Assembly: GCA_964200185.2 (NCBI GenBank)
Contig: CAXNAD020000055.1
Location: forward strand, 1-34,144
DNA: 34,144 bases
Reading direction: 5' to 3'
Source: Choristocarpus tenellus KU-1152
Lineage: Eukaryota > Protista > Phaeophyceae
Shown here: positions 18,701 through 34,144 of the stretch, piece after piece
Position numbering within the stretch: the stretch's first letter is position 1
Layout of the letters: every line of letters begins with the position of its first letter
Notes under the pieces: generated by a model
Database searches by the model: none
Told to the model about the DNA's origin: nothing
Seen by the model: the letters and a program-made list of their open reading frames with translations, nothing else
Translations under genes and position numbers: made by a program

Positions 18701-21700
18701 GCATTTACCAGTACTCCATCACACCACTGAAATGACGGTGACGACCTGCCCACTCCATGTCCCACATCAAAAGCAGATGAGCGGACAGCTGATGCCAACA
18801 ACCTCACATTGTGAACGCACCATTCCAGATTTAAAAGCTTGTTCTTGCGTGTACCATCTGCTTCACTGCTGGTGCCACGGTGTAAGTCTTTAAGGAATAC
18901 TGTCGCTGATTCAAGGGCACCTAAGAGCACCTCCACGGTCACAATTCCCTGGATCAGGGAACAACAGCACAGAAGTGGAATCACTAAAAGAAACCTGATT
19001 CATGCAAGTGAGAAATTCCTTCTAGCAGTCTGAGTGTTCCCGAAACAAATACGGGTTGAAAGTAATGATTGGGCAATCATACACAAGAAAATGTACACTA
19101 GATGTGGCTTAACATGTGCGGGTGCACATAAAGCAAACACATGCTGAGAAATGGATATTCTTGACATGTAATTTACACACCTTTACATCAAACCCGGACG
19201 TAGCTGAACATCCAATGCCTGCATCATGAGAGAGTGGAGAAATGTAGGATCTCCTGACAGCCTCCCACGCATCCCATGCACATCTCGTGAGTTGGGATGT
19301 TCTCACCTGCAACACCCAAAAAAACACAAGAGCAGATCATAGTGGGTCACAACATCTCATCACAATCATTACTATATCCCAATGACTTCAATATCACCAG
19401 AGAATGGATGTCAGAACATACAACTCAAAATAGAGGTTGCAATCCCATCTCAGTTAAACTGTGTTACTGTAACCTGTCTTATGCGCACATTGCTACTAAC
19501 AGAGAGTAAGGAAAAGTTTTCTTGACGATTTATCATCTTGCCACAAAATACGGTTTAAAGTTAGTTGAATATTAGGAGGGCTTACCTTTCTCTCTGCTTC
19601 AACAGCATTAGCAGGGACGCTCTCAGGAGACATCAAAAATAGACACACTTGCTCTGTTACTCCCTGGAGTTTTTGTCGCAACTCAGCATGCCTTGATCTG
19701 GAATCTACCTGTTGTATGATTATAAAAATTGACGCCACTTCAGAGTGTATGATGTTGGGATTCACAGAATCATCAGAAAGTCAAACAAAATTTTGGTCTT
19801 CCAGTATGACCATCAACATTCTATAGCAAACATGCTAGTCCAACAAGAATTCAAGCAAATGTAAGCATGACATCAAAGATCATGTCCATCATGACGACAA
19901 CTTTTCAGCTGCGTGACACGAACGTGTAAAAATGACATGCTCGCCCTCCTCAACAACAGTTTCACCCACACCTTTGCAGGAGTAAAGTTTACAAGTTTTG
20001 AAAAGGGATCGATTGAATTTTCCCTGGGTTTGACAACCACCAGGCCACGGGAAAAAGACCACGGCGGATAACACACCTGGGTGTCTGAGGCATAACACAA
20101 GAATCTCTACTTCGCCACCCATAACAACACATGTTAGAAAAAAATGAGGGGTTAAGGAGGTAACTGCAATTGCCTAATAGGGTAGGTAACACTTAAGTTT
20201 TTTGTGCAGCACAATATTATAAGCAACGAACTTTTCGAATTTCCAACGATCACAAGAGAAAGAACCAAAGGTTTTACAGGATGAGCAACTCTCGACATAA
20301 AAAGAGCACCTTAATCCTTTGTAAGGATTCTCACATAATGTTCATAAAAAAAAATTATCCAGAAGGAAAAACCCGGTCTTCTTTTGCACACTCTTATTCA
20401 CAGCAGAAATTAGTCTCCTTGTTCTTAACTCAACGGGATTTAGTCCTGTAAAATAATTACACCAATTACTGATAATGCATATTCTATGGCTGGGCTGTTT
20501 AGGAATATATCTATTACAGAAGTCAGAACCAGTCCTATTAATCCCATAAACAAGAATGAACCCAATCCTGTTAAATCCTTACCAGTGGAATAGCCGTATA
20601 GACTCATACCGCCAAACATAGCAGAGCATACAAAGAAAGTTCTAGCTATTGACGCTCCTGTATAAATTATACCCTAGTGCTGCCATTCTCAAAATTCACC
20701 CCCAAGTACATGCACCAGCCCAATGAGAAGTATTTGAAATTTTTCAAATCATTACGAACGAAATAGTAGCCACATGCCCATCTTGGGTGAAGTGTTAGTC
20801 TCTAGAGACTTGGAAATGACTAGAAGGAACACAAAAATTACACTTAAAATCATCCTGACCTCTACTGAGGTGTTGAGTTGATCATGTGCCAGATTCAACA
20901 TGATGGGTGAACTTAGCACTTTCATCTAAAACAAGAGGGAATGGTGATGAGCCTACATCGACCGTGGCGCAAGTTCCTTCAAATTATCAATTCATGCAAC
21001 ACAATGGATTTACATCTGCAAGTCACAAATATCTTACCTGCTCATAGCATCCAAGCAGCTCCGAAATGTCAGTGGCAGGTGACAGGGCGACCTCTCGCAA
21101 CACAGCCCCAACTCCTGTTGCCAATGATCGGACCAGTGATGTCTTCCCTGTACCACGGTGACCAACAATAAGACTTGGCCACCCCATATTAACACACCTG
21201 AAAGATAGGGTGAGGATGAGACTTTAACTTGCAACGAATCACCAAGTCCACACCTCATCTCTAAAGATCCATGTTTCTATTCTCAAGTTATATCATCTTG
21301 CTCAGCACAGCTCGGAAGACAATTAGCAATAGTTCGCACCAATAGTTCAAAAGCACACTGAACAAGACAACCCCATCGAATAGTTCAACAATAAACACCA
21401 ACATATTACCACTCAAAGTCACAGAAGAGCAAATCCCAGGTACAGTGTGTAACAAGGTCGACTTCCGCAAATGGCATGCGCTTTTTCCATTCACATCCTC
21501 GTAAGCTCTACTCTTATAGGCAAACAAACAAGAGATTTGGATGCTTTGATTGCACCAGCATTGATTGGTACCTCAGGCAGTCTGTCCAAATCAATAGGCA
21601 TTAGCCTCACTAGAACTTGATTAACCCACACAAGAGACCAGGTCAATGAACTGTGCCCATTCACCTTTTAAGGCACAGTCCAGGCATCACTGGCCATGTC

Positions 21701-24700
21701 GTAGGTCATCACCGACCCTGCTACCTTGGAAGATCTCCACCTGTCCTTGCTTAGTATCATCCTTACAAAGGAACCTCTCGTCGGCAGCACAAACACCCTA
21801 AAGTTTTATGCTTGCCAAAAAATAACACAGCAACAACACCAGCAACAACTTGACTGACCCCAGAGAGCAGAGTAGTCATTACAACCATTCAAGTTTCACA
21901 CCCTACTTGTATCAGGTATAATATTACGCCACAGTCAAATTTCTTACATATAACTGATCAAAGTCAAGACCAATGTAAGAAATTCAATGTGGCGTTATAG
22001 TACACACACTTCAACCACAGCTCAATATGTGAAAGGCACCACTAGCATACCCTTGACATTCTCAGCTGACAGCAGAAGCCCATCGTACTCACTACAATCA
22101 TTGTAACGAAAATGTGACCAACACACCACATACATCCCCAAAAGTAAACAAATTGGCATATTATATCAGTGCGTTCATTGTATCGTGTGATACTCAAAAA
22201 GACTAGAGACATGATAAGTTGCCAAAGAAAATATTTTTTTACCAACCTTGCAAGCGCCAGTAGCGGCCTCCTCAGGCCAACAGGAATGCGCATATTCCGA
22301 TCCAGTCCTCCACATTTCCCGTCCAACTCGTATCCAACAATTGGCATATTATAACCAGCAAATCCATGGCCCATAATCCAAGTTCCACGAGGCACCAGAA
22401 CCTCCCCAATCTGGATGTAGGTTGGGGTTACCCTTAGCTCTGGATTTGAGCACACCATTTCGGAGCAACTGCTGCCGGTCGCCTCTAGTGCAGAGGGCTC
22501 AAAACCGCAACCCTTATTAGAGGGTGTATTAGGAAATACTTCAAAAAATCTTGCTTGGACAGCTTCTCTATCTGACAGAGTCCGCATTCGCTGTACGTAA
22601 AGTGTGTCCAATGACCTCCTAGGTTCCCATCCTACTCCACCATTGGAGCCATTCGATCCTTCTACATTAACTCCTCTATCGTTTACACTTGAACGCATCG
22701 ATAATGTCAACGGAGAATTAGTACAATCAGGAACTCCCTGCTCACGAAGAATGAGAAGGCACCAGCGAAACACATCGCGCAGGTTGAACTCCCATGCCCC
22801 CCCTTTCTGTCCATACAAGCATTTTTCTGATGTATCTTCCTGAACCAGGCTATAAAATAATCAACGATGAGCATAACAAAAAACGAGGTGGAACTGTGTG
22901 AAGATGATAATATAAGTTATTGTATGAAACCCCGTGTTCAGCATAACACGTCTCCCTATGTAAAGGAGCATAGAACAAAATATGCTAGCATAATTCACAT
23001 ACTCAGGGCCATCAATGAAAGAGTAAAAGCAGTGTGTTACTCAGCTTGAATTGCATCCTTAAGACAAGTTTAATAAAAATGCAAGAAAACAATAGGAAGG
23101 AACCATGTCAAATCAACTCAACAACGGCATGTTACCATAAAAATGGAAGTTGATCAACCAGGCTCTGTTTCACCTGTTGAAACGAATCATTTTGGCCAAT
23201 AGTGAATTCTGCTTCTCATTCTGGGATGCTTCCTTGATTGCTTCACTTGTAGAACATTTTCCGGACGGAACATGCACTGCAGCCAGTTGGGGAAACTTGG
23301 CTTCAGCAATGTGTAGCAAATCCTCCGGGGTTAGAGCATCCACAAATACCTTATCACAAAAGGCAACAAAATATTGATCAAATGAATGAAAATTAATAAA
23401 CATCGAACTAAACACAATGTTAAGGACCTGTTCTCCATATTGATCGCATCTCTTCCTCCCAACAATAAAGTGAGTCAACGAATTTGGGTTCAAAATCCAT
23501 ATATGCTGTACAAGTGGGGTACCAGAATAAAATTTGCCACAACCCCATTTGTATTGTTCTTACCTTTGTGAATCGACTTAGAAATGACTTTGGAAGACCT
23601 TTCCTCCCCCCACCCTGACCCAAGGGGTTCTGTGCAGCGAATACTTTGAATGTTGGTGGGCAACGGAACGACTGTCCCAACTCCGGAATGTAGACTTCCT
23701 CACGATGATCCAGGCAAGAGTTTAATCCCTCCAGCACATTCTGGGCCATGAGACAATATTCAACGCAGACAGGGTAAACATTCAAAAAAACTATGTCCTG
23801 ATCGGTATACAACGAAAGAATATATCCTTTAGGCACGAATGTGATCTAAACAAAACAAAATATTACCGTCCGGACGAAACAGAGAATAGAGACAATCCGT
23901 AAGGATAATGAAATCGACTAACTCAAATAATTGTGTATTACCTGACTAGCGAGGTTTAGCTCATCAAGCAGCACCCAGCTTCCTTTCTTCAGGGCTTTCA
24001 GAAACATACCATCACACCAAGCAAACCGTGCCCCTCCACTTTCCCCACCACCACTCTCATCTCCACGCCCTCTCCCCTTCATGCCCTCAAAGAATTCCTC
24101 TTTGTCTGGTACTGGCAGATCAGAACCGAAAAGGTCTGAAACATCCGTTTGTTCCGATAGGTTGATACGAACAAGCTGTGAAGAATCCAAACGAGGAAAG
24201 ACCGACAACAATGACAAAAGTTATACCATGGAAAGACCAATGCTACAGGATTGCATGCCATGACACGTAAGAAATTACAAATCACACAAAAAAAACAATA
24301 CATGAACATATTTTCTCCTTAAACACAGCACCCTTATGGTAGTCACCTTCCTGAATCAAGAAGTCAACAGTGCCTACTTCAGTTATCACCGTTCACCTCA
24401 TGGCCAGAGGTCCTTGCTAACGCCTCAATCAAGCTTGTCTTTCCCACCCCAGGACTGCCCTCCAACAAAACAGCCTTCCTGAGCTGCAATGCTCGGAGAA
24501 CTCTCACTGCATTCAATCCTGTCGTTGCTGCTCCAAGAGAGAACCCAATGTCCTGGGTCCCGACATCTGGAAGAGGACGACCACCACATGGGGTCCAAAA
24601 GTCTCCTGAACCAAACAATGCTTGGGGGGCAACATGGTCTTCAACTGACAGTGGCTGTGATGCGGTGTGATAGCGAACACCAAATCGTAGAGACTTGCAC

Positions 24701-27700
24701 TTTGGGAAAAGATGTGTAGTCGCCCTGGAACGTTCCAGGCCTTCTGGCACCTGTTACATATGGAATTATCATTTGGGCTCACACTCAGTTGATGTGTACT
24801 TACGAGTTCTAAAACAGGTCAACCAAGTATATGACAAATATTGGAGAGAATGTAACTCAATGCACTGAAAACAGGTACCATACACAGAACCCAGAAAGGT
24901 GGGCATTTGGCTTGTGCAACTGATGCACAAAACCTAATGACCAATGAGCATATAATCCAAAATACTTGCCAAAATGTAAGTATCACTACCAATGGCCAAA
25001 CGTTTTCAATAACTCTCTCTTGCATTGATACAGCACGAGGCTTACAAAATATGCATCTCCCCGATTTGTCTTACCTGCTCGAGAAGCACCTTACATGCAA
25101 CTTCTTTGAACTTTGAAACGTCGCCAGGAGACAAGCCCGCACCAAGGCCCAGTCCATCTAGCACAATCAACGAAGCCCCATGCACATAGGCAGCCCATGC
25201 ACCCAAACCCTGCGAACTCTCTGCTACTGACTGAGGATTCTCTGCCACACCTCTTGCCATATTACCACTTTGGCCACATACGTTTGAAATAAAGTGTGCC
25301 CACCCCAACAAATCTCGAATTGAAAGTGTCAGACCATGTCCACCAGCATACAATGTTGAGACCTGATAAGCACAAGCAAAGGGTGATTGGAAAGTATGGT
25401 ATTCTACCTCAGGTATCAGGCAGTTGGTAGTTCACAATGTTTGTGATTGTACAGTATACTAACACCTTAAATGTTGATGCCAATCGAAGTTGTTTGTGCA
25501 GAAAGAACACTTCAGGATATTTCGATATATACCATGGATTATATTGGTATACTCCTGCTCTTCAACATAAATAAACCATTTTTTTATTGTTAGAAAGGAA
25601 AATGGAAAACGTCATCCTGCAACTCTTTTGTTTATTCTCAATCGAACATTACTCCAATTAATATGAGGCATGTTTCAACAATGATTGTACCCAAAAATAA
25701 AACAGCATAAATTTCGAAGCAGGCAGGCACATGTCTATCAGGTATTACATTTACCTCTCGGTTAAACCACCATGCGAAGTCAAGCATGGCCTCCGCCAAC
25801 CACTGTAGACCACCTGAGTTGACCTCCTTTAGTGCTTTGATAACAACACCCTCCATGTCAGCCCTGTCGAACAGTCCAGGAACCCATACCTAAAGATTGA
25901 TATTTATTAAGATATGTATTATTAGTCCATTATATCAATGTAGCCATGAGAATAAGAGCATCCAAGTTGATATTGATGGATGTAATGAAATCATGTTCAA
26001 CCAATGTAATGTGCTAACTCATACCATTGCTACTATTGTACATAAAAAAGGGGTGATATGTACTGACATGTATAGATCTGTGGTATTGATCTGGACAAGT
26101 GTGATGAACCTCACCTCAGTAAATCTTGAGCGAAGAGCAGGAGATAGCTCCCTCTTGCCAAAGTCTCCACCAGGGTTCATGGTGGCCATAACTCTTAACA
26201 AAGAAGGATCATCCAGTGACATAAACGTTTTTCAAGAAAGAAATGTTAGATAAATTACAATCGCAAGCGGTGAAGTATTAAAAAAATCAATGTTTAAATG
26301 ATCCTGCATTCTAAATGTCTATAGAAACAGTGTAGAAGGATCATTGAGATCCAGGGTAACAAAACACATTCTAACAGACCCCAAGATATTTCAAAGGCAC
26401 TATTGCAGAAAGAGTGACAATTTTTGGTGTCTAATACACACTGGAAAAACCACTCAACAAAACTGTGTAAAAGAACCTCCTACCAATGACAAGTATCAAC
26501 CATTGACATGCCTGAATCCAGGAGCAGCCACCACTGTTTCTGCTATGCCTTCGCTTTCTCCACCTCCCTTCTCTGCCAACGTAATTGATCTTCCTGATTC
26601 CAGGACAGAGTTCAGCCTTTCTAGCACAGCATCCTCTGCCAAAGACAGTTCATCAAGTAGCAGTAGTTCCCCTCTGCGCATTGCTGTCACCAATGGTCCA
26701 TCTGCCCACTCGAACAGGCCTTGACACCTTCTACCAAGTGCTTGAAGTGACACCAACTCCTCCTCCAGCTTGTCCTTAAGACCTTGACAGTTTGCATTGT
26801 GCATACTCTCGCCACAACTGCTACCAATCACAGCACCGGCTTGACCTTTTGAAGAGTTCGACTCTTCCTGGTCACTACTATCTTTATTCGTGGAACTGGT
26901 TTTGACTGCTCCACTAAAATGTTTTCGTCGTCTCTTGGAGTTACCCCTTTGCTTTCTCTTCTGCTCATCATGCCCAATATCCTTCTCATCAACCACCTGA
27001 TCCACAGAAAGACACTGCTCTTGGGCATCTTCACACCTCGTAGACATGTCCCGTTCTTCACCCCCGTTAAGTCTTATTCTCTTTGCACTGAGGTTAGGGG
27101 CAGATTCACCTACTGGCTGAGCTCCATCTCCACAATTGTGGACCAAGATTGTGTGCTGTGTCTGTAGTTTCAACAAGGCAGACTGCGCCTTTGACCAGGC
27201 AGCCTTTCTTTGTAGATTCGATGTCATGGTAATTTCCAAAGGGGCAAAAGAGGCAAGTGAGTCGTCGAGAAATGGTTCTTCTGTTACACACATCAGGAAA
27301 ATGTGTTGCAATGGTCAAGTGGATCACACAAATCCATAATGGAAGTACATCTCCTGTTACACACAACCATGTGTGTTGCGGTGGTGAAGATGGATAACAT
27401 AAATCCACATATGCTTGATGATCCCCGTGACTTCCTTGCACATTTGGATTGCAAGTTAGTATGTAGAACCTAGTCCAAGGTCTGGGACACAGGAAACTCG
27501 ACGCCATCAACCTCCATAAGAAGGGAGGCAGTCAAGCAGCACAAGACCTAACTATAACCTAGATCCTGAAAATCTTTCTAGCATTCGTGACGTTGTCGTT
27601 GACCGCTCAAGGCCATGAGAGGACCAAGGCAGAGATACCGATTTGCATCAGAGTGGGTAATCGCATTCAAGGAAACATGGAACACATTTGAATATGTATT

Positions 27701-30700
27701 AGTATTCTTACCTGAATTGCAGAGATGATATCCTTCACAGTCCCAGATTCCATAACTGGTTGATCCCTGTCTTTTGATAGATCTGCAACATTTTCCACCC
27801 TAATCCCAGCACACATCTCTAAAAACAAGGTAGCCCTATCCCGCAGTTCTTTCACAAGTAAATCACGTCCACGAAGAGGCCTTAGACCTCCTAGAAGATC
27901 TGCAGCTTCTGTGTTTTGATGGCAATTGACAACATGCATCCTGACACCATCCAGCGCCACACAACATAGTAGACAACGAAGTGGGTTGTGTGGGGATTGT
28001 TAACTGTACATAAAATCAAGCCCACTCATAGAACACTGTTTATCAACAGGCTTACAATGTTAGTAACAAGTGCCATCCTGTTGGACCTGTGTTTGATGCA
28101 GCTATTGAGTCAACTAGGTCCATCAAGTGTGTTGACGAACCAACAAACTTGGCATGAAAGTCAAGAAGACTCTTGCAATGCACACAGAACATCTTAACAC
28201 CTCGATATTACTTTCGTAGGTGCTCAGTCACAATCTTGACTGAGCACATAGGAAAAGAACATGAGTGGATGTACTTCTGTGATTGGGGAGTTACTTCCTA
28301 CCACTGTCTGTTACATTCGTGCCACAGAGTAGAAATGCATGTCCTTCATGCACCAGGGACAAGTCATTATTCATGTACAAAGAAAAAAACAGTTTCTCCA
28401 TGTCAGGAAGAACGACTCACTTAATATCAAGCTACACAACAGATGTCAAATTTCATCACCTCCTCCCAAGAAGAGTAGAATAAAGTTGGCAAACAGTTGT
28501 CTTTCCGCAACCTGTCTCTCCAACTAGTAGAACAGGTTCCAAATTGGAAAGGCACCTCCCTACCAGTCGGAAGAGTCTCCGCATATGCCTGCCAACGTTA
28601 GCGAGACAAAGCGAGATAGGGAAAGTATTACACAAAATAATTAAACTAGATTGATGCTTGTCTCTCTGAAGTCATATATCTCTACATAAATTTATCACAA
28701 TTTCTGCACATTTGTCCTTGCCAAGATCCCACCACAAAAACCAAAAAATGACATTTTTATGAGGGCATGGTAACTTAACATATGCTGGCACGAATATTAC
28801 AATTTTCCTAGCTCAGCTAATGAGATTCCAAATCAAAATCCTCATCGTGCCTCTCACTACAAGAGGACAAAGGAAAAATGATATTTGCATCACTGCCAAG
28901 AAAACAACAAGGATATAGTAGAGCACAAAATTATAGTAATTACAAAAATTGCAAACCATCACAATTTCAAAATTTTCGTGATAAACCTCTTTTTAACTGA
29001 CAGATGTTCAGGCTCAGCAGGTGGTAAAAAATTGAGATTCCATGTTTTTTCATCCCCAGCAATACGCACAACACGTCTTTGTCGGAGTCCCTAACTTTTC
29101 GCATCATAGCCTTCACTTGTGAACGATTCATTGCAAACACATAAAAATCACACTTTTTTATCACACTTGTCAAAGTACAGGCTCAGAGATTAACCCTAGT
29201 TATGTAGGGCAAAATTGAACACAACAGAATTGTTCTGGAAGGCACAAACTGTATTCAGGCTCAGTAAATGGTTAATTTGAGATTCCGTGCGGGTTTATCC
29301 CCAATGATACGCACTACACGCCTCATACGGATGTCCCTAACTTTTCACATCACAGCCTTTTTACAGACCTTCAAAGCCTTTACATGAAAAAGGGGAATAT
29401 GAAACATTTCATCTATTCAATTATTGACATGTAGCATTTATCCTCTACAAAAATCAACCAGGGCACTTGACTCTAGTAACCACCATGTGCTGTAATGCAT
29501 GGTCAAACAGATAGGAATACGCTGTTGGATATTCCCTAGTTGCTAGGAGGTTATCCTTAACATTTTCCTTAATCTGGGGTCGTAATACTCTAATGAAAAC
29601 TTTAAAATAAATTCGTGTTTGAGGCTAGAGGAAAACAAGTCAGGAGTATGGTGTGCTTATAGAATATTTGGAATATATATGCTCACACACATTGAACATA
29701 GAATATCATGAGAATCAAACTCTACATAAAGAGTGCATGGTGTCAAGATGTAGGTGATAGACCTTCCACACTGAAAGGGATAGATATAATTACCTTGTCA
29801 GAGCTACTCCCTCCAGACCAGCTTCAGAACCCATCCCCTTATCTAGCATGTCCTGCACCAAGAGAAGCTGAGCATGGTTTCCGAGCCTTGTGTCAGCAAG
29901 CTCTTCCTCCTGATCATGCTTCAATGAGACATCCACACTACTATACAATGCCTCTGTGTCAATGGACACTCCAAGCTTTTAAACAAAGTTAGAAAAGAAG
30001 ATGTGATCAGCTTCAACACACAGAACACTTGAAAAATGAGCAAGCATAAAATATAGCTTCATCTGACAATATATGCTATCAATCTATCATCACTATATAG
30101 AGGGGAAAAAGTCATTCATAGTGAAATATTTAACAATTAAACAACTTAATTTAACAATTCTTTTTCTATTATCTCTATTTTTAAACTACACACCTTTTCC
30201 TCCAGCACGTTTTTCATCTCCATTTTTTCTTCTTCTCTCCTTAGCCTCTCAGCCAAAAGCATGTATCTGTCAAAAGGTGACATCAAACTACTTCAGATCT
30301 ACAATACCTCGGCGGTCATGAAAATGCTAAACATTCTACAACAATACTGTTATCATTGCATATTGTTTGTCGTGGGGGTAACTGTGTAACAAATTAATAA
30401 GAAATGTAGCCTTCCTCAAACAGCGCAGTCAGGGCGTGACCCCTGACATGCCTCCACCAGACCCCCCCCAAAAAATAGTGTATGCCTCCCGTCTATCAAA
30501 TTCCACCTACAACCAAAGATCTGCTGCCCTAGTAGCACTCTTGAACATGTCTCATTGAACACTGTATGTTTACCTCAAACCCTTTTGGTGTTGAGTGGGA
30601 ACAGGGTTGTGAGACAAATGGACAAGAACTAAGGGCAACAGGTGCAGTAAGGTCATTTATGAAACAAATGAGAGACTTCCAGCACACAAGTAGAGGGCGT

Positions 30701-32023
30701 CATTAAAGTGTAGAGGGTTGAGCAGATGGCTGATTGATCTTGCTGGGCATGAAACGGACCATGAGGCATGGGTCAAAAGCCTTCCCCACGGTTAGCTGGG
30801 CCAGCATACATGTTCAAATGCGTGTTTTATTTCACCATTTCGGTGTTGGCAGTTGTCAGAACTAGTCCCCACTTTTTAACATACACAGCCTATTCTAAAC
30901 AAAATGTAATACTGAAAAATGGGGCGCAATTTTTCTTACCCTTCCTCAGCCAGTTCTTGTTTTCCTTGTGGTGATCTTCCCGCCCATCGCAGCAAGTCTC
31001 GAGGTGATATCGGTCCATGCTTTCCCAAAAAGAGTCGACTTGTTTGCCGTCTGGCCTGGACATAAATATGCAGAAAAACCGTAACAAAGGTGATATGCGC
31101 ATTTTTTTTATTAATTACAGCAATAGCATTGTGAATCACTAATTAATCAACTCCAGCTAGATCAATTAGTGTAGCTTAACTATAGTATTGATCGGTTCAC
31201 AACACCCATGACACTTAAATGAGATACAACTTTCAAATATAAAATCCAGTGCCTTCTTTATGAACATTAAAGAACTAACCTGCAAATCCTGCAGCACACC
31301 CACCAGCAGCTTACAATGACTAGGAGGAACTCCACATCTCTTTTCCAATATGGTCTCCCACTCCTCGCCAGGTATATCACCCACATGAACCTGATCCGGT
31401 TTTCAAGACCGTTCCATGAAAGTATTTCCAAACGTATGTGAACTAGAGTTCCAGATCAGGTGGGTAATGCACGAAACGGTCAAGGTCATGGAGGATTCTG
31501 ACATTTAGAATCGCAGATTTTGATCGATTATACTGCTAAAACTTAAGTCTAAACACCTCCCTGATTCTATCCATTTCGTACTTGGACTGTAAGTGACCAT
31601 CATAATTTGCGTACCTCCAAGAACCTGTTCCTGAAAGCTCTTGAAAGTGGCTTACGCCCACCATATACTCCAGGGGGGTTTTGAGTCGCAAAAAGGCGGA
31701 AGGCAGGATGCGGTTTGATGATCTCTTGGGTTTCAGAGAGGAAGAGTTCTCTGTTGTTATCAAGGACTCGATTTAGAGCCTCAAGAACCTGTATGCAAAC
31801 AGAGAAGACAACAACTGTTGGTATCTTAACAATTGTGCATCACTCCAAGTCTTGATTCAGGAGTAAAACAGTGATCTTCTGTAAGAAGCGCTCTGATATG
31901 AAACACTTGAAATACAACAGTTCGGATATGTTTCCATTGGTCACTTCTTACCTCTGAAGGGGCGAGGTTAAGTTCATCAAGGATGATCCAGTAACCTTGT
32001 CGTAGTGCTTGCACTAACACCCC
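449..32023 (-). CDS. MDN1: Midasin (Rea1) AAA+ ATPase, partial multi-exon gene (43 exons in window, 4,910 codons; both ends outside the window)
   Basis: Tandem AAA motifs: WIILDELNLAPSE; GETGCGKT/LLLLDELSLA/ATMNPGGDFGKRELSPALRSRF; GSPGVGKT/WVLLDELNLA/AAQNP; GHRGTGKT. These are followed by the linker (LFPDF, WWFYLY, KWDEQTYY) and the D/E tail (GTGMGEGEG). Exon phases are compatible throughout. Confidence 0.97.
991..1163 (-). CDS. MDN1: MDN1 exon, D/E-rich tail (ELDREMG...VVDEKMWD)
   Basis: tag acceptor, gtaag donor; midasin-type VDEKxW motif. Confidence 0.92.
1479..1549 (-). CDS. MDN1: MDN1 exon (GLEMENDFDGELFDIPK)
   Basis: tag/gtgagc; EMxxDFDG motif. Confidence 0.92.
1693..1846 (-). CDS. 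MDN1: MDN1 exon (FDDDVEGTGMGEGEGKKDVSDQIEDEEQ)
   Basis: cag/gtgaga; conserved GTGMGEGEG. Confidence 0.95.
2143..2265 (-). CDS. MDN1: MDN1 exon (GKLHYVIVRVFRTLLSKGLC)
   Basis: aag/gtacat; motif at the end of the linker. Confidence 0.92.
2433..2548 (-). CDS. MDN1: MDN1 exon (YDAASAAIISLC...IAFSK)
   Basis: cag/gtgagg; phase 1/0 fits neighbours. Confidence 0.82.
2772..4146 (-). CDS. MDN1: MDN1 exon, linker
   Basis: Within 471-aa ORF; cag/gtgagt. Confidence 0.9.
4458..4589 (-). CDS. MDN1: MDN1 exon (AKRADYYYLKSL)
   Basis: cag/gtaaca; phase 0/0. Confidence 0.88.
4722..5546 (-). CDS. MDN1: MDN1 exon, linker (KKRAVLDLLSELKKQGLS)
   Basis: Within 338-aa ORF; cag/gtgagg. Confidence 0.9.
5976..6113 (-). 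CDS. MDN1: MDN1 exon (VSSAEVLHG...MVKK)
   Basis: cag/gtaaca; open frame, phase 0/0. Confidence 0.8.
6542..6695. repeat. Dispersed ~150-bp intronic repeat, copy 2
   Basis: Same orientation and blocks as 259-410. Confidence 0.8.
7030..7126 (-). CDS. MDN1: MDN1 exon (WDEQTYYSLAESSEKSHRKL)
   Basis: cag/gtaag; conserved motif. Confidence 0.93.
7276..7358 (-). CDS. MDN1: MDN1 exon (IEKKLKEEAKLAK)
   Basis: cag/gtgagt. Confidence 0.92.
7651..7823 (-). CDS. MDN1: MDN1 exon (FLRTAPIGEFFARL...RYYSQ)
   Basis: cag/gtgagg; GEFxxRL motif. Confidence 0.92.
8169..8264 (-). ncRNA. Box C/D snoRNA, SNORD102-like guide (LSU rRNA)
   Basis: GGCT-ATGATGA(C)...GTATTTCATCGTCG-CTGA(D')...ATGATGA(C')...CTGA(D)-GCC. 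All four boxes are canonical and there is a terminal stem. Confidence 0.88.
8446..8540 (-). ncRNA. Box C/D snoRNA paralog of 8169-8264 (partly degenerate)
   Basis: C=ATGATAA, identical D' guide plus CTGA, C'=GTGATGA, D=TTGA. Confidence 0.65.
8692..8989 (-). CDS. MDN1: MDN1 exon (AHRWWFYLY...)
   Basis: aag/gtaggt. Confidence 0.87.
9141..9380 (-). CDS. MDN1: MDN1 exon (KAQEWE...RWRALELRSW)
   Basis: cag/gtttgt; conserved WRxLEL. Confidence 0.93.
9755..10340 (-). CDS. MDN1: MDN1 exon (DFYHDANVVE...EFPGH)
   Basis: cag/gttaga. Confidence 0.9.
10458..10642 (-). CDS. MDN1: MDN1 exon (tandem TAGCAG acceptor, 10642 or 10639)
   Basis: Open frame, gtgagg donor, phase 0/2 fits. Confidence 0.78.
11148..11288 (-). 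CDS. MDN1: MDN1 exon (EERLKSLFPDF)
   Basis: cag/gtgtgt; conserved LFPD motif. Confidence 0.88.
11690..11771 (-). ncRNA. Box C/D snoRNA, 18S rRNA guide (copy A)
   Basis: AGTCG/TGACT stem, C=GTGATGT, D'=CTGA. The 16-nt D guide CACTCTAATTTTTTCA is antisense to 18S UGAAAAAAUUAGAGUG. Confidence 0.8.
11863..11940 (-). ncRNA. Box C/D snoRNA, 18S rRNA guide (copy B)
   Basis: GCCA/TGGC stem, C=ATGATGA, D'=ATGA, D guide AACACTCTAATTTTTT-G-CTGA. Confidence 0.87.
12367..12439 (-). CDS. MDN1: MDN1 exon (AEEKKAEEQRKKDEILKYK)
   Basis: tag/gtgagt; phase 2/0. Confidence 0.87.
12702..12805 (-). CDS. MDN1: MDN1 exon (ALLCRAELY...NSWAR)
   Basis: tag/gtatga; phase 0/2. Confidence 0.82.
13108..13869 (-). CDS. 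MDN1: MDN1 exon, linker (acceptor probably GAG)
   Basis: Within 312-aa ORF; gtaagc donor. Confidence 0.85.
14425..18514 (-). CDS. MDN1: MDN1 giant exon (4,090 nt): end of AAA6 and proximal linker
   Basis: SVLDRLNPLLE...PHPNFRLFLT...GEVSRAMRNRCVEI; cag/gtgagc. Confidence 0.95.
18647..18948 (-). CDS. MDN1: MDN1 exon, AAA6 Walker B region (FQWCDG...WLLLDGANLC)
   Basis: cag/gtgagg. Confidence 0.93.
19181..19306 (-). CDS. MDN1: MDN1 exon, AAA6 insert
   Basis: cag/gtgtgt; phase 0/0. Confidence 0.75.
19586..19708 (-). CDS. MDN1: MDN1 exon (VDSRSRHAEL...)
   Basis: cag/gtaagc; completes EQ|VD motif. Confidence 0.87.
20441..20673 (-). pseudogene. Fragment of a bacterial Bax inhibitor-1/YccA-family membrane protein gene (Rickettsiales-like), frameshifted, intronic
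   Basis: Hand translation GIIYTGASIARTFFVCSAMFGGMSLYGYSTGKDLTGLGSFLFMGLIGLVLTSVIDIFLNSPAIEYALSVIGVII-[1-nt deletion]-TGL. There is an in-frame stop upstream and codons mostly end in A/T. Confidence 0.85.
21038..21197 (-). CDS. MDN1: MDN1 exon, AAA6 Walker A (GHRGTGKT...TDISELLGCYEQ)
   Basis: cag/gtaag. Confidence 0.95.
22247..22849 (-). CDS. MDN1: MDN1 exon (GGAWEFNLRDVFRW...YVQRMR)
   Basis: tag/gttggt; AAA5 lid motif. Confidence 0.93.
23174..23349 (-). CDS. MDN1: MDN1 exon (VFVDAL...KMIRFN)
   Basis: aag/gtgaaa. Confidence 0.92.
23564..23740 (-). CDS. MDN1: MDN1 exon, AAA5 (VLEGLNSCLDHR...GRKGLPKSFLSRFTK)
   Basis: cag/gtaag; highly conserved. Confidence 0.96.
23942..24175 (-). CDS. MDN1: MDN1 exon, AAA5 (RINLSEQTD...WVLLDELNLASQ)
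   Basis: cag/gtaata. Confidence 0.96.
24397..24750 (-). CDS. MDN1: MDN1 exon, AAA5 Walker A (LLEGSPGVGKT)
   Basis: cag/gtgaac. Confidence 0.95.
25075..25362 (-). CDS. MDN1: MDN1 exon (SIRDLLGW...LDGLG)
   Basis: cag/gtaag. Confidence 0.93.
25755..25889 (-). CDS. MDN1: MDN1 exon (VWVP...MLDFAWWF)
   Basis: tag/gtaaat. Confidence 0.92.
26115..26193 (-). CDS. MDN1: MDN1 exon, AAA4 (ATMNPGGDFGKRELSPALRSRFTE)
   Basis: aag/gtgagg. Confidence 0.96.
26512..27203 (-). CDS. MDN1: MDN1 exon, AAA4 insert and Walker B (acceptor uncertain; GC donor)
   Basis: FEWADGPL...LLDELSLAEDAVLERLNSVLE; the phase-0 acceptor at 27203 is inferred. Confidence 0.85.
27712..27940 (-). CDS. MDN1: MDN1 exon (VNCHQNTEAADLLGGLRP)
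   Basis: cag/gtaag. Confidence 0.95.
28460..28588 (-). CDS. MDN1: MDN1 exon, AAA4 Walker A (EPVLLVGETGCGKTTVCQ)
   Basis: cag/gtgatg. Confidence 0.96.
28810..28897 (-). ncRNA. Candidate box C/D snoRNA, LSU guide
   Basis: C=GTGATGC, C'=ACGATGA. The D guide GGAATCTCATTA-G-CTGA matches LSU UAA(C/U)GAGAUUCC. Short terminal stem. Confidence 0.6.
29010..29112 (-). ncRNA. Candidate box C/D snoRNA (pair, copy A)
   Basis: AGGCT/AGCCT stem, C=ATGATGC, D=CTGA; elements GTTAGGGAC and GGAATCTCA shared with copy B. Confidence 0.68.
29257..29358 (-). ncRNA. Candidate box C/D snoRNA (pair, copy B)
   Basis: AGGCT/AGCCT stem, C=GTGATGT, D'=ATGA, D=CTGA; collinear with 29010-29112. Confidence 0.68.
29794..29975 (-). 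CDS. MDN1: MDN1 exon (LGVSIDTEALY...GVALTR)
   Basis: aag/gtaatt; phase 0/2. Confidence 0.87.
30194..30266 (-). CDS. MDN1: MDN1 exon (YMLLAERLR)
   Basis: cag/gtgtgt. Confidence 0.94.
30940..31055 (-). CDS. MDN1: MDN1 exon (FLGKHGPISPRDLLRWA)
   Basis: cag/gtaag. Confidence 0.95.
31280..31390 (-). CDS. MDN1: MDN1 exon (DIP...ILEKRCGVPPS)
   Basis: cag/gttagt. Confidence 0.94.
31615..31788 (-). CDS. MDN1: MDN1 exon, AAA3 (VLEALNR...FATQNPPGVYGGRKPLSRAFRNRF)
   Basis: cag/gtacgc. Confidence 0.96.
31952..32023 (-). CDS. MDN1: MDN1 exon, AAA3 Walker B (WIILDELNLAPSE)
   Basis: cag/gtaag. Confidence 0.96.
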
Positions 32024-32162
32024 CTGGCCGAAACAAGACATGGACGGAAACGTGACAACATAAGGAATATAGATTAGAACTGAAGGAACATGGAGAAACT
32101 CTTACACAGAAACATGCAGATCAATGCAGAAAGAAGAAACGAAGATTACCTTCCTCAAGGCT

Positions 32163-32272
32163 TGCTGGATTAGAATCAACTGGTCACCTCTGGCTTGACG
32201 GGGACAGCTCTTTCGAATTAAACCATGGTCGATCTTGTAAGGGGAAAGAAGACTTTTTCATCATTTCCAGCA
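32163..32272 (-). ncRNA. Box C/D snoRNA array copy 1 (snR190/SNORD12-like; box D mutated to CTAA)
   Basis: TGCTGGA/TCCAGCA stem, C=ATGATGA, guide GTCTTCTTTCCCC. Confidence 0.65.
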
Positions 32273-32490
32273 TCAGAAATAGTTGGTGTCTACTGACGTA
32301 TTCAGCATCAAGTCTATTTGTAGACTTGGGACTTGCATACACTAGTACTTGCAAAGTTAGTGAGCACACACACACTAGGCAATTTTCACAAATTATAAGT
32401 TGGTGAGGTGTAATGGACAAGGGAAGACATCGACTCCCTTCACGCTCAATACAAGAGAGAAATTTGACACTGAGCACACAGAATGCAACA

Positions 32491-32603
32491 CTGGATCAGA
32501 GTTGACCAGTCACCCTCTGGCTTGTCGGGGCTGGCTCTTTCATAATAAAAAAAAACCATGGTCGATCTTACATGGGGAAAGAAGACTCTCTCATCATCTC
32601 CAG
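32491..32603 (-). ncRNA. Box C/D snoRNA array copy 2 (snR190/SNORD12-like)
   Basis: CTGGA/TCCAG stem, ATGATGA, GTCTTCTTTCCCC, CTGA. Confidence 0.83.
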
Positions 32604-32693
32604 ATAGGCGCATCACCAAATAATCATTCACATAACTAAGCAGACTCCAAACAGAACCTCTTCAATGTTGCACTGTAATTTATTTTCTTAATC

Positions 32694-32803
32694 ACTGGAT
32701 CAGAATCAACCTAGCACCTTCTGGCTTGGCAGGGCCGGCTCTTTCATACTAGAACCATGGTCGGTATTACATGGGGAAAGAAGACTTTCTCATCATTTCC
32801 AGT
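32694..32803 (-). ncRNA. Box C/D snoRNA array copy 3 (snR190/SNORD12-like)
   Basis: ACTGGA/TCCAGT stem, ATGATGA, GTCTTCTTTCCCC, CTGCCAAGCC, CTGA. Confidence 0.85.
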
Positions 32804-32983
32804 TCCTTGATAAAATGTGACAAATCTTTCTGACGTAGTAGTTTCGCTTTCATCAAGACAAGCTACCAAACTAAGCTAATGAAAATCCTTTCAAGGTCTC
32901 CCATGTATGCTACCCTGGCAAGTGACAAGGCTTTGGTCAGAAACAAAATACTGAAGGATCTTTGAGGCTCACTCTTGTAGTAC

Positions 32984-33088
32984 TGGATCAGAATTGACCA
33001 AACACCCTCTGGCTTGGCGGGGTTGGCTCTTTCCGATATAACCATGATCGATCTTCCATGGGGAAAGAAGACTTTATCATCACATCCA
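32984..33088 (-). ncRNA. Box C/D snoRNA array copy 4 (snR190/SNORD12-like)
   Basis: TGGA/TCCA stem, GTGATGA, GTCTTCTTTCCCC, CTGA. Confidence 0.83.
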
Positions 33089-33394
33089 TACCATCAAAAG
33101 TGTGCTATATGATCATTTAAAATTGTGGCTAAGAACTTACTGAAGTCTTACTGTTTAGAAGTACAAGAATCAGATAGGTGATTTGTTCTTTCTCCAAAAA
33201 AATCCAGGTCATTGGTGTGGGCAATGACAAGCATAGTCTATCAATACTTCAGACACTGCAGAAGAGATTTAGCAGACCTTCTCCATTGGCAGAAAGAAGT
33301 AGATGTTTGTCTATGTGTGACAAGTAGCTTATCTACCACACTATCAAGAACATAATGGAAAAGAGGTGAATGACCCAGAAACACACAAGAAATC

Positions 33395-33524
33395 TCGATC
33401 AGAAAATGTTCCATGGTGTATCTTCAAGAACTTGTCTCAAGCATTGAAGGTGTTGTCAAGCACCCCACATTGCATGGTAAAGGATTGCAGAACAGGTCTC
33501 CAAGATGTTTTTTCATCACATCGA
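33395..33524 (-). ncRNA. Box C/D snoRNA, LSU guide (antisense to CAGGUCUCCAAG)
   Basis: TCGA/TCGA stem, C=GTGATGA, 12-nt guide CTTGGAGACCTG, D'-like CTGC, D=CTGA. Confidence 0.75.
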
Positions 33525-33664
33525 AATATTTCCCACAGTTTCTAAAGCAGGGTTTGATGAGACTTCAAAAAGGACATTCTGTATTTCCTAGAAACTACAC
33601 AAGCTTTCTCTTTGCATCATAGTTGATTCAGTAGCGTAAAATGTGCATTGGGGCTCTGCAAAAA

Positions 33665-33831
33665 TCGATCAGATAGTGGTGCATGTTGAATCATCAATAT
33701 CAGGCACCAAACATGAGAACTGAATAGGCAAAACTACACTTCTCAGCGTAGAATTTGTGACCCAATCAGTCTGCATATGGCTACCATTTACAGAACAGGT
33801 CTGTGATATGGATCTGTTTTCCTCACATCGA
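33665..33831 (-). ncRNA. Degenerate paralog of the 33395-33524 snoRNA
   Basis: Same termini (TCGATGTGA...TCTGATCGA), C=GTGAGGA, partial guide AGACCTGTTCTG. Confidence 0.45.
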
Positions 33832-34144
33832 CATTCACAAAAAAAAAACATTAGCAGTACATCAACAACATTGATGTTGGGCACAGTGCACAAGATGTCG
33901 AAAAAATCTTCATTGCAACATGTTCATATTGAATCATATCCAAAGAGTAATACCACATCTTTATATGACACCAAGCATAATAGTATACTGATACCTTTGA
34001 CGTGTCTTCCTTTAGCATGAGAATGATGCCATGCTACATTTTATATTGGCCAATATCAAAACTCCATCTTTATCAGTCTGATACTTTCTAATTTCTGGCT
34101 TATTATATTCCCATAATTCCTTTGAACTTAAATCTGCCAAATTA

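Follow-up and report, generated by a model that had tools for sequence, protein, structure and literature searches.

The question raised by this locus is whether four similar units, repeated near the end of a Choristocarpus tenellus contig, encode working snoRNAs, and if so, which RNA they would act on and in what manner. The window, that is, the whole stretch of 34,144 nucleotides analysed here, contains four head-to-tail box C/D snoRNA genes of 105–113 nt each, all on the minus strand and together spanning 32165–33089. With boundaries drawn from terminal stem to terminal stem, these are c1 (32165..32270), c2 (32491..32603), c3 (32695..32802) and c4 (32983..33089), scoring 129.4, 126.4, 133.7 and 131.9 bits with model R1, respectively; c4 comes first and c1 last in transcript order. 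The array is a real snoRNA gene array under selection. We further consider it probable that the units are functional, paralogous C/D snoRNA genes lying in a midasin intron, the products of which would clasp helix 72-73 of the LSU rRNA by a guide plus extra segments.

The spacers between c1–c4 (220, 91 and 180 nt) are mutually dissimilar (local-alignment z of −1.1 to 2.5), and despite these unalignable spacers the bodies of the units are 78–87% identical, with 75 of the 113 alignment columns invariant and the longest invariant run (14 columns) being the guide. No two-unit block duplication within the array was found from spacer similarity. By BLAST and covariance-model searches of the 164 Mb assembly, six copies exist genome-wide: c1–c4, a good fifth copy, c5 (C52:9341-9446), and a degenerate sixth (C3221:6243-6358). 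In the sixth, box C is broken and the guide and loop element are both gone, as would be expected without selection. No host gene was identified for c5, the sole Pfam result there being a TPR match below threshold. The sequence-only reading, which had described four tandem units of about 105–113 nt with unrelated spacers, had itself named a high-copy dispersed transposon fragment as the finding that would overturn it. The description holds, on the minus strand; and since the other contigs add just one good copy and one decayed one, and c1–c4 all follow the strand of the host gene, a reading of the array as part of a dispersed repeat or transposon retains next to no probability. Beyond this genome, a metagenome scan for the guide plus AGATCGA returned nine contigs; as none has a box C and model R1 gives them 13–16 bits, we regard them as chance matches, with no homologues gained. 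A scan of viral contigs for the rRNA pattern was empty.

Within the units, box C reads AUGAUGA three times and GUGAUGA once. Box D is CUGA in c2 (32496-32499), c3 (32700-32703) and c4 (32988-32991), and RUGAUGA and CUGA occur together in c2, c3, c4 and c5; in c1 the box D site (32170..32173) is mutated to CUAA, with no read variant seen. The 5-bp terminal stem, CUGGA/UCCAG (AUGGA in c4), is paired in 96% of cells and, being invariant, gives no covariation evidence. An internal hairpin (alignment columns 72-81 and 93-104) has four pairs changed on both sides, with a covariation score of 0.240 that was reached by none of 500 shuffles, slid controls giving 0.03–0.13. The good copies thus share box C, the terminal stem, an AAGAUCGAYCAUGG block, the invariant GAAAGAGC and a hairpin with compensatory changes. 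The block combines a D'-like AAGA with the SNORD12-consensus motif, as placed by the RF00581 alignment, and lies at 32223..32236 in c1 (AAGAUCGACCAUGG), 32556-32569 in c2, 32755-32768 in c3 (AAUACCGACCAUGG) and 33042-33055 in c4. A second C/D family of the same genome also carries a GUAAGAUCGAUUAUGG block. Further on, the invariant motif GAAAGAG(C) is found at 32208..32214 (c1), 32535-32541 (c2), 32739-32745 (c3) and 33027-33033 (c4); all these positions are on the minus strand. The conserved RTGATGA, the kept terminal stem, an invariant 13-mer and the lost box D of copy 1 had all been claimed from the letters alone, and each withstood the closer analysis.

The mutated box D invites the thought that one copy works and the rest are decaying duplicates. 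In favour of this, c1 shows, besides CUAA, an altered spacer 3' of the guide and a hairpin lacking one G, the loop element of c2 has a mismatch, and the pairing before box D is lost in c2 and c4. Decay of this kind is hard to reconcile with spacers that are saturated, yet box C, the guide, GAAAGAGC and CAAGCCAGA are present in every copy, and with hairpin differences among copies that are compensatory; true decay, as seen in the C3221 copy, has a quite different appearance. We therefore hold a mostly dead array to be distinctly improbable.

The four genes lie on the strand of the midasin (MDN1/Rea1) gene, the identity of which was confirmed by search, in an intron occupying 32026..34144 (minus strand); it is at least 2.1 kb long, its 5' end lying beyond the contig end. 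Its joints read CT..AC on the plus strand, that is, GT..AG on the minus strand. A spliced RNA contig of 12.4 kb (run X3) exits the window at 32025 and thereby defines the intron, and the midasin exon directly downstream of it is 31950..32025 (minus strand), host exons being taken from read joints only; the upstream exon was found in neither the window nor the assembly. Unspliced RNA contigs cover the intron at depth 6–10; being contigs of one run, they show that the intron is transcribed and resolve neither discrete 105–113 nt RNAs nor strand. Presumably, the mature snoRNAs accumulate after release from this pre-mRNA. Also on the minus strand of this intron are another C/D snoRNA (33425..33531; GUGAUGA ... 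CUGA, a UCGAU/AUCGA stem and the snR56/SNORD25-type guide AGACCUGUUCUG) and two further C/D-like units (33665..33836), one snR56-like (33741-33830, 26.2 bits) and one SNORD33-like (33665-33746, 22.4 bits). A search of the window for U14/SNORD14 (E up to 5) gave none; c1 is followed instead by the exon.

To which RNA would these snoRNAs pair? The 13-mer guide GTCTTCTTTCCCC, here called ASE1, is identical in all good copies and sits inside the 14-column invariant run, at 32241..32253 in c1 (GUCUUCUUUCCCC), 32574..32586 in c2, 32773..32785 in c3 and 33060..33072 in c4 (minus strand). Three pattern searches of the algal genome for its native LSU gave no match, a search for the sarcin-ricin loop pattern gave one-mismatch matches only, at chance level, and the two rDNA contigs reached through 5.8S lack LSU and have a degenerate or chimeric appearance. 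As the native LSU is absent from the assembly, all pairing was computed on a plant rDNA proxy. Of 65 loci fetched, three from plant-symbiont assemblies (L024, L041 and L069) were read, the remainder being left out as some are possibly human rDNA contamination. On the proxy, ASE1 forms 13 perfect base pairs with LSU 2394-2406 (−22.1 kcal/mol), its only such site across proxy LSU, SSU and 5.8S. The predicted target is thus the 5' strand of helix 73, at the root of LSU domain V, at GGGGAAAGAAGAC. This strand holds human G3878, S. pombe G2483 and S. cerevisiae G2395 (PMC11971394, PMC8536666). The proposal that the 13-mer is antisense to domain V was borne out on real eukaryotic LSU sequences, and so was the statement that snR190 and SNORD12 act at this site, which published work names as the target of snR190, snR107 and SNORD12 (PMC8536666, PMC11971394). 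A match of CCAGAGGGUG to proxy SSU 662-671, which is proxy-specific and falls in a variable region, was for these reasons dismissed as fortuitous.

Two further segments pair next to this site. The loop of the covarying hairpin presents an element at 32189..32202 in c1 (CCCGUCAAGCCAGA, which contains the second element noticed earlier), 32516..32529 in c2, 32720..32733 in c3 and 33008..33021 in c4 (minus strand); one or two of its nucleotides also belong to the CCC/GGG part of the stem. In c3 the element is CUGCCAAGCC and makes 10 perfect base pairs with proxy LSU 2377-2386 (−18.6 kcal/mol); in c4 it is CCGCCAAGCC, with 8 bp to the A variant of the rRNA; c2 is an A variant with only 6 bp left. 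The rRNA reads GGCUUGGC(A/G)G here, and a native G would make c4 and c5 perfect 10-mers. Both forms had been read correctly in the initial inspection, as had their match to the adjacent rRNA, which on the proxy lies 7 nt upstream of the guide target. The gap itself is accounted for by the heptamer abutting box D on its 5' side: in three of the five copies (c1, c3 and c5) it pairs with proxy LSU 2387-2393. In c1 (32174..32180) and c3 (32704..32710) this D guide is GUUGAUU, forming 7 bp with one G-U; the variants GUCAACU in c2 (32500..32506) and GUCAAUU in c4 (32992..32998) break the pairing (all minus strand). Since the D guide fills the gap between the targets of the loop element and ASE1, contiguous pairing over 30 nt becomes possible, and c3 is the only copy in which all three antisense segments pair perfectly with the proxy.

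How much of this exceeds chance? In c1, c3 and c5, 15–17 of the adjacent 17 nt of proxy LSU are covered, a coverage reached by 18, 2 and 10 of 5000 shuffles, respectively, with a statistic chosen post hoc; for c2 and c4 the same test (5000 shuffles) was not significant. Against generic shuffles, duplex energy gave p of 0.01–0.10 and the longest helix of the extra pairing 0.03–0.31, and the loop element alone is weak (0.03–0.3). Statistical support for extra pairing beside the target is thus moderate. Conserved elements outside the boxes and guide do pair beside the target, which is the pattern termed extra base-pairing by van Nues et al. (2011). By contrast with the fungal relatives, no conserved domain I antisense helix of 8 bp or more was found in proxy LSU 300-379, and the only nearby match is a c2-specific, G-U-rich poly-U helix at proxy LSU 380-391.

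Combining these data, we propose the following model. The products of c1–c4, released from the midasin pre-mRNA, and that of c5 would be versions of one box C/D snoRNA, each folding as a C/D kink-turn closed by the 5-bp terminal stem. The invariant 13-nt element after box C would pair with the 5' strand of helix 73 and the 8–10 nt loop element with the 3' strand of helix 72, and in three of five copies the 7 nt before box D would pair with the 7-nt linker, lengthening the contact 5' on the rRNA. As the three segments are adjacent on the rRNA, their simultaneous use would let the snoRNP hold up to 30 contiguous nucleotides unfolded in the early pre-60S, as snR190 and snR107 do, with fibrillarin probably placed close to the third of the four Gs in the GGGG run. 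In human, S. pombe and Arabidopsis, the G at the equivalent position carries a methyl group (PMC11971394, PMC8583080, PMC8053127).

The outcome could be methylation, chaperoning or both. Budding-yeast snR190 binds its helix 73 target without methylating it (PMC8536666), and the present snoRNP might do likewise, binding the helix 72-73 strand and never modifying it because C'/D' is too degenerate or wrongly spaced. Indeed, although the guide duplex has 13 perfect pairs on the proxy, D' is degenerate: as the initial inspection had also seen, no CUGA-type box directly follows the guide, and four nucleotides intervene before AAGA (AAUA in c3). Compared with the SNORD12 consensus, the distance from guide to AAGA has two extra nucleotides, so that a strict fifth-nucleotide rule would select the first G, where the duplex ends. 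The GAAAGAG motif is a candidate split C' box, itself degenerate, and/or an internal partner of ASE1, with which it can form 7 bp (−6.2 kcal/mol), and a similar stem has been described for snR190 (PMC8536666); moreover, a long multi-segment pairing exceeds what a methylation guide needs. Disagreeing with a purely non-modifying role, however, the G in question is methylated in the three species mentioned above, activity is compatible with strongly divergent D' and C' boxes (PMC3116282), and a putative, degenerate D' (GUAA, GGAA, GCAA or ACAA) lies exactly in the NNAA register for the third G, whereas it is the AAGA register that selects the first. The domain I element that accompanies the chaperone role in fungi is also lacking. 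We thus regard a chaperone that never methylates as possible but doubtful. The earlier description of an amplified, chaperone-type snoRNA stands as to its multiple copies and its target; its chaperone-type character is conjectural, the domain I element being absent and the equivalent G methylated elsewhere.

Homology is a separate matter. The family that these units come closest to, judged by target, by a shared motif and by layout, is SNORD12/snR190/snR107. Its members have been described in organisms ranging from yeast to human, with the element order C - ASE1 - D' - conserved motif - C' - stem-loop - ASE2 - D (PMC11971394). SNORD12 is the best Rfam family for all four copies, and its RF00581 consensus aligns with AGAUCGAC between D' and C' in each of them. 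The scores, however, are 18.0–22.6 bits (the highest for c2) against a gathering threshold of 43 bits, and the model is unspecific in this genome, with unrelated loci reaching 25.5 bits; at gathering thresholds, Rfam reports nothing in the window. The label snR190/SNORD12-like proposed by the sequence-only reading is therefore upheld by target, motif and layout, and not by Rfam, where the copies remain at genome-wide noise. Could a non-homologous C/D snoRNA have arrived independently at the same conserved rRNA site, so that the label would describe function only? The low scores fit such convergence, as does the fact that in Arabidopsis this G has a guide catalogued as a separate RNA, SnoR28 (PMC8053127); in addition, the presence of GUAAGAUCGAUUAUGG in another C/D family may make that block a lineage-wide protein-binding module and not a family mark. 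These points are offset by the AGAUCGAC and AUG match, which extends beyond the guide, by an element order equal to that of snR107 (PMC11971394), and by the acceptance of fungal and animal guides to this site as orthologues. The stem-loop downstream of C' would likewise be the equivalent of that in snR107, going by the published description. Descent from the common family is the reading we retain, convergence appearing unlikely.

Having set out the model, we would add a more speculative version of it, which we think improbable as a whole. The lineage might have dropped the domain I tether in favour of a local three-segment clamp, in which D' guide, hairpin-loop element and D guide would cover an unbroken 30-nt stretch, reaching from helix 72 (3' strand) to helix 73 (5' strand); the knotted order of the segments would require both snoRNP faces on one rRNA stretch. 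The middle segment alternates along the array, being present in c1 and c3 and absent from c2 and c4, and the two subtypes could be functionally distinct, for example, a tight clamp versus a releasable guide. If true, the amplification within the midasin gene would link the dose of an early pre-60S chaperone to expression of midasin, the ATPase of later pre-60S remodelling.

The interest of the locus lies in the role of its relatives. Few snoRNAs have been shown to act in the folding of the peptidyl-transferase-centre domain, over and above its modification, and snR190 and snR107 are two of them. Known relatives of the two are confined to fungi and animals, and in plants one survey failed to find the guide for the equivalent Gm. 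A relative present in several copies in a distant, apparently plastid-bearing eukaryote shows which parts are old, namely the guide with its following motif and the stem-loop, and which part is free to change, namely the second antisense element, with local pairing here as opposed to domain I in fungi. The five paralogues constitute, in effect, a set of natural mutants of the extra pairing; in other respects this is an ordinary intronic snoRNA cluster.

Several likenesses and differences emerge from comparison with the known systems. In human SNORD12/12B/12C (RF00581), too, the guide lies 3' of box C, is directed to the identical LSU sequence and is followed by the AGAUCGAC...AUG motif; SNORD12 directs 28S Gm3878 (Gm3899 in newer numbering), and its paralogues, too, come from introns of one host gene (PMC11971394). 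The human copies, however, occupy one intron each of the non-coding ZFAS1, whereas the algal four share one intron of a protein-coding ribosome-assembly gene. The guides differ (CUUCUUUCCCC in the array versus CUUUUUUCCCC in human), as do the spacing, with two extra nucleotides before the D'-like box, and the size, 105–113 nt with a hairpin versus about 90 nt; human ASE2 is described as small in the SNORD12/snR190/snR107 papers.

The S. pombe snR107 is intronic and has the same order of elements; its ASE1 covers the same 13–14 nt with the third G as target, and, methylation apart, the RNA contributes to 60S biogenesis (PMC11971394). Its ASE2, in contrast, is 11 nt directed to 25S 333-343 in domain I, whereas the D guide of the array is 7 nt directed beside the ASE1 target, and snR107 is a single-copy gene in the fungal synteny with U14, whereas the array is multi-copy without a downstream U14. 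The S. cerevisiae snR190 has the same target in helix 73 (G2395 region), and its C' box is likewise split or degenerate; it may form an internal stem that sequesters the guide, and a conserved element far from the boxes, which crosslinks to Nop1, provides extra pairing next to the target (PMC3116282, PMC8536666). Unlike the array, snR190 is non-intronic, being cut from a dicistronic transcript with U14; it does not methylate, and it bridges domains I and V through box B.

Finally, Arabidopsis SnoR28, the assigned guide for 25S Gm2396, targets the equivalent G with a main duplex of 7 bp plus an adjacent extra 8 bp, as opposed to the 13-bp main duplex of the array (PMC8053127). A test of the plant snoRNA families in Rfam gave no match to the units at E up to 10. 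Intronic clusters of multiple snoRNAs are a common gene organisation in plants and algae, and the array shares all the essential features of these, with several snoRNAs, tandem paralogues included, placed in one intron on the strand of the host.

The four genes form a real intronic array, kept by selection, of a box C/D snoRNA that targets the base of LSU domain V. The units lie on the minus strand at 32165-32270 (c1), 32491-32603 (c2), 32695-32802 (c3) and 32983-33089 (c4), each measured from terminal stem to terminal stem, and the intervening spacers of 220, 91 and 180 nt bear out the lengths estimated in the sequence-only reading. In the minus-strand sense, a unit begins with the terminal stem CUGGA, box C ((A/G)UGAUGA), a 4-nt spacer and GUCUUCUUUCCCC, followed after 4 nt by AAGAUCGA(C/U)CAUGG. 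Between this block and GAAAGAGC lies a U/A-rich linker that varies from 8 to 17 nt; an irregular hairpin with the loop C(N)G(N)CAAGCCAGA follows, from which 7 nt separate box D (CUGA) and the closing stem UCCAG. In c1, box D reads CUAA, with no variant at this site among the DNA and RNA contigs covering the region.

The unit bodies are 78-87% identical to one another, and local-alignment scores for the spacers and flanks fall inside the shuffle range. Alignment of the four units with a fifth good copy from another contig (c5) shows no variation in 75 of its 113 columns. The invariant runs (UGAUGA; a 14-nt run with the guide, the 13-nt antisense element after box C; CAUGGUU; GAAAGAGC; CAAGCCAGA; and AUCCAG) coincide exactly with the functional-looking blocks. 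The hairpin, predicted by RNAalifold between GAAAGAGC and box D, has four pairs that vary on both sides, three of them neighbours and one closer to the loop (CG/UA, GC/AU, AU/UA/GC). Its covariation score is 0.240, as against 0.109 ± 0.038 in shuffles, none of 500 reaching the observed value, and 0.03-0.13 with slid partners. This is consistent evidence for structure, of modest weight given five related sequences.

A high-copy, dispersed transposon fragment, the alternative that the sequence-only reading had set against its own proposal, was rejected on the genome-wide copy number. BLAST of the 164 Mb assembly with one unit returned the four window units and C52:9341-9446 (c5), whose setting is also intron-like. 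A covariance model built from these five copies recovered the same five at 126-138 bits, plus one degenerate copy at C3221:6243-6358 (54 bits). In this sixth copy, UGAUUA replaces box C and neither the guide nor the loop element survives, with box D and parts of the hairpin still present; it is probably a pseudogene, and illustrates how the unit looks without constraint. Two further weak matches belong to a different, shorter C/D RNA having only GUAAGAUCGAUUAUGG in common with the array. This near-identical pair (C3600:4977-5071 and C8488:3072-3166) carries AUGAUGA, a likely box D CCGA and guides other than that of the array (GUCAUAUCUUCCGAU and GCCAUCACUUCCGAU, respectively); it may be either a diverged paralogue, or GUAAGAUCGAUUAUGG may be a module common in Choristocarpus tenellus.

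The host gene encodes midasin, as identified by the domains AAA_lid_7 (22042-22818) and AAA_5 (26496-27311) in minus-strand ORFs of the window and likewise by an atlas search. One of three public runs (X3) is in practice RNA. A 12.4 kb X3 contig omits six stretches with borders CT..AC on the plus strand, that is, GT..AG on the minus strand, and exits the window at 32025 into a further exon that is absent from both the window and the assembly. Thus, the array sits on the host's strand in an intron that spans at least 2.1 kb (32026 to past 34144) and interrupts the mRNA roughly 1 kb from its start. The assignment of the array-side exons to the same gene as the downstream midasin domains is based on their position and a single long contig. 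Unspliced X3 contigs cover the array intron at a depth of 6-10, as against 56 for exons and none for some other introns; the intron is thus transcribed, and the mature snoRNAs themselves are predicted. Such intronic snoRNA arrays are a common gene organisation in plant-like lineages.

The same intron holds at least three more C/D-like units on the minus strand. Those at 33425-33531 and 33741-33836 are paralogues with an snR56/SNORD25-type 18S guide (AGACCUGUUCUG), one having a degenerate box C (GUGAGGA); that at 33665-33746 is SNORD33-like (guide CAUGCACCAC), with a degenerate repeat at about 33900-33960. In both DNA runs (X1 and X2), a joint omits 33698-33787, loose ends occur at 33664, 33807 and 33934, and depth rises to 50-215 with several variants near the contig end (33934-34144), a pattern suggesting that the snoRNA-like units there exist in repeat copies or differ between haplotypes. 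Elsewhere in the gene, an X3 contig of depth 25.5 covers 30408-30798 within the intron 30267-30939, the neighbouring introns being uncovered. It has no Rfam match; intron retention may account for it, or a further small RNA, perhaps H/ACA (ACA near 30405). Other midasin introns give weak Rfam snoRNA matches (19806-20082 and 11860-11943, minus; H/ACA psi18S-1377-like, SNORD11-like and snoR16/SNORD73-like). Thus, the gene appears to host many snoRNAs.

The native LSU was not found anywhere in the assembly, and pairing was therefore tested on real eukaryotic LSU present as a contaminant in bacterial assemblies. The only rDNA pieces in the assembly are a 3' SSU-ITS-5.8S fragment running into unrelated sequence and a lone 5.8S (C10314 and C3273), and the 5.8S carries many C-to-T-like changes. 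A 31-mer spanning both target elements matches exactly in at least 65 contigs of assemblies labelled bacterial or MAG, a sign of contamination by eukaryotic rDNA; Rfam identifies three of these, from plant-symbiont projects, as eukaryotic LSU, in complete or partial rDNA units. In this plant proxy, 2377-2406 reads GGCUUGGCAG-AAUCAGC-GGGGAAAGAAGAC. The guide matches 2394-2406 perfectly over 13 bp (-22.1 kcal/mol), with no second such site in the proxy LSU, SSU or 5.8S. The second element that the sequence-only reading had matched to the adjacent rRNA does pair there, with 2377-2386, through 10 bp in c3, 8 in c4, c5 and c1 (one G-U) and 6 in c2; a G in the native rRNA in place of the proxy A would bring c4 and c5 to 10 bp. 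A further segment, absent from that reading, is GUUGAUU, the 7 nt adjoining box D on its 5' side in c1, c3 and c5, which pairs with 2387-2393 (one G-U); c2 and c4 have GUCAAYU at this position, and the helix is broken.

By predicted pairing, the three segments can thus cover 30 contiguous rRNA nucleotides in c1, c3 and c5. Their order is guide, loop element and D guide on the snoRNA, and guide target, D-guide target and loop target from the 3' end on the rRNA, so that all three pairing at once would form a knotted arrangement, not a single continuous duplex. Statistical support for pairing beside the guide target is mixed. For the 3' part paired with the 40 nt that precede the target, generic shuffles gave p values of 0.01-0.10 (energy) and 0.03-0.31 (longest helix); a coverage statistic chosen post hoc, with the data in view, was reached by 18 (c1), 2 (c3) and 10 (c5) of 5000 shuffles, and was not significant for c2 and c4.

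The site is the target of budding-yeast snR190, fission-yeast snR107 and human SNORD12/B/C, and the third G of its run is methylated in human (G3878) and S. pombe (G2483) and unmethylated in S. cerevisiae (G2395), where snR190 is a folding chaperone removed by Dbp7 (PMC8536666, PMC11971394). The equivalent Arabidopsis Gm2396 is present, without assigned guide in one survey (PMC8583080) and assigned in another to SnoR28, through a main duplex of 7 bp and an additional one of 8 bp (PMC8053127). The D' box bears on whether the array would methylate or chaperone. Compared with the SNORD12 consensus (CCCCAU-CAGA), the units have two additional nucleotides before AAGA; were AAGA the D' box, the fifth-nucleotide rule would select the first G, which forms the terminal pair of the duplex, a design that would be non-canonical. 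A degenerate NNAA (GUAA, GGAA, GCAA or ACAA) would instead select the third G, the conserved site, and divergent D' boxes can be active (PMC3116282). Since the third G is methylated in three of the four lineages studied, we consider its methylation here slightly more likely than none. The D guide would select the A at proxy 2391, which is not among the methylated sites given for this region in Arabidopsis tables; extra pairing is its more likely role.

The best Rfam family is SNORD12 for all four copies, at 18-22.6 bits (threshold 43), and in a genome-wide search the same model gives unrelated loci as much as 25.5 bits; the score is thus no proof of membership. The units have the same target as snR190, snR107 and SNORD12, and the guide is followed by AGAUCGAC, a motif alignable to the SNORD12 consensus. 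In snR190, a conserved element distant from the boxes base-pairs next to the target and can be crosslinked to Nop1, the C' box is split and an internal stem possibly sequesters the guide (PMC3116282, PMC8536666). The array units, correspondingly, have an invariant GAAAGAG (a possible split C' box, or 7 bp with the guide), a stem-loop after it and pairing beside the target. Whereas the second antisense element of the fungal members addresses domain I, that of the array is local, beside the guide target; no helix of at least 8 bp occurs in proxy LSU 300-379, the sole match nearby being a c2-specific poly-U helix at 380-391, and U14 was not found downstream of the array. By target, motif and layout, the units are classed as SNORD12/snR190/snR107-like, and homology is likely. 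The array adds a member to a family already known from yeast to human, noteworthy for a possible 30-nt contact through three segments, a second antisense element that is local instead of directed to domain I, two subtypes alternating along the array, and a host gene, midasin, that is a 60S assembly factor too.
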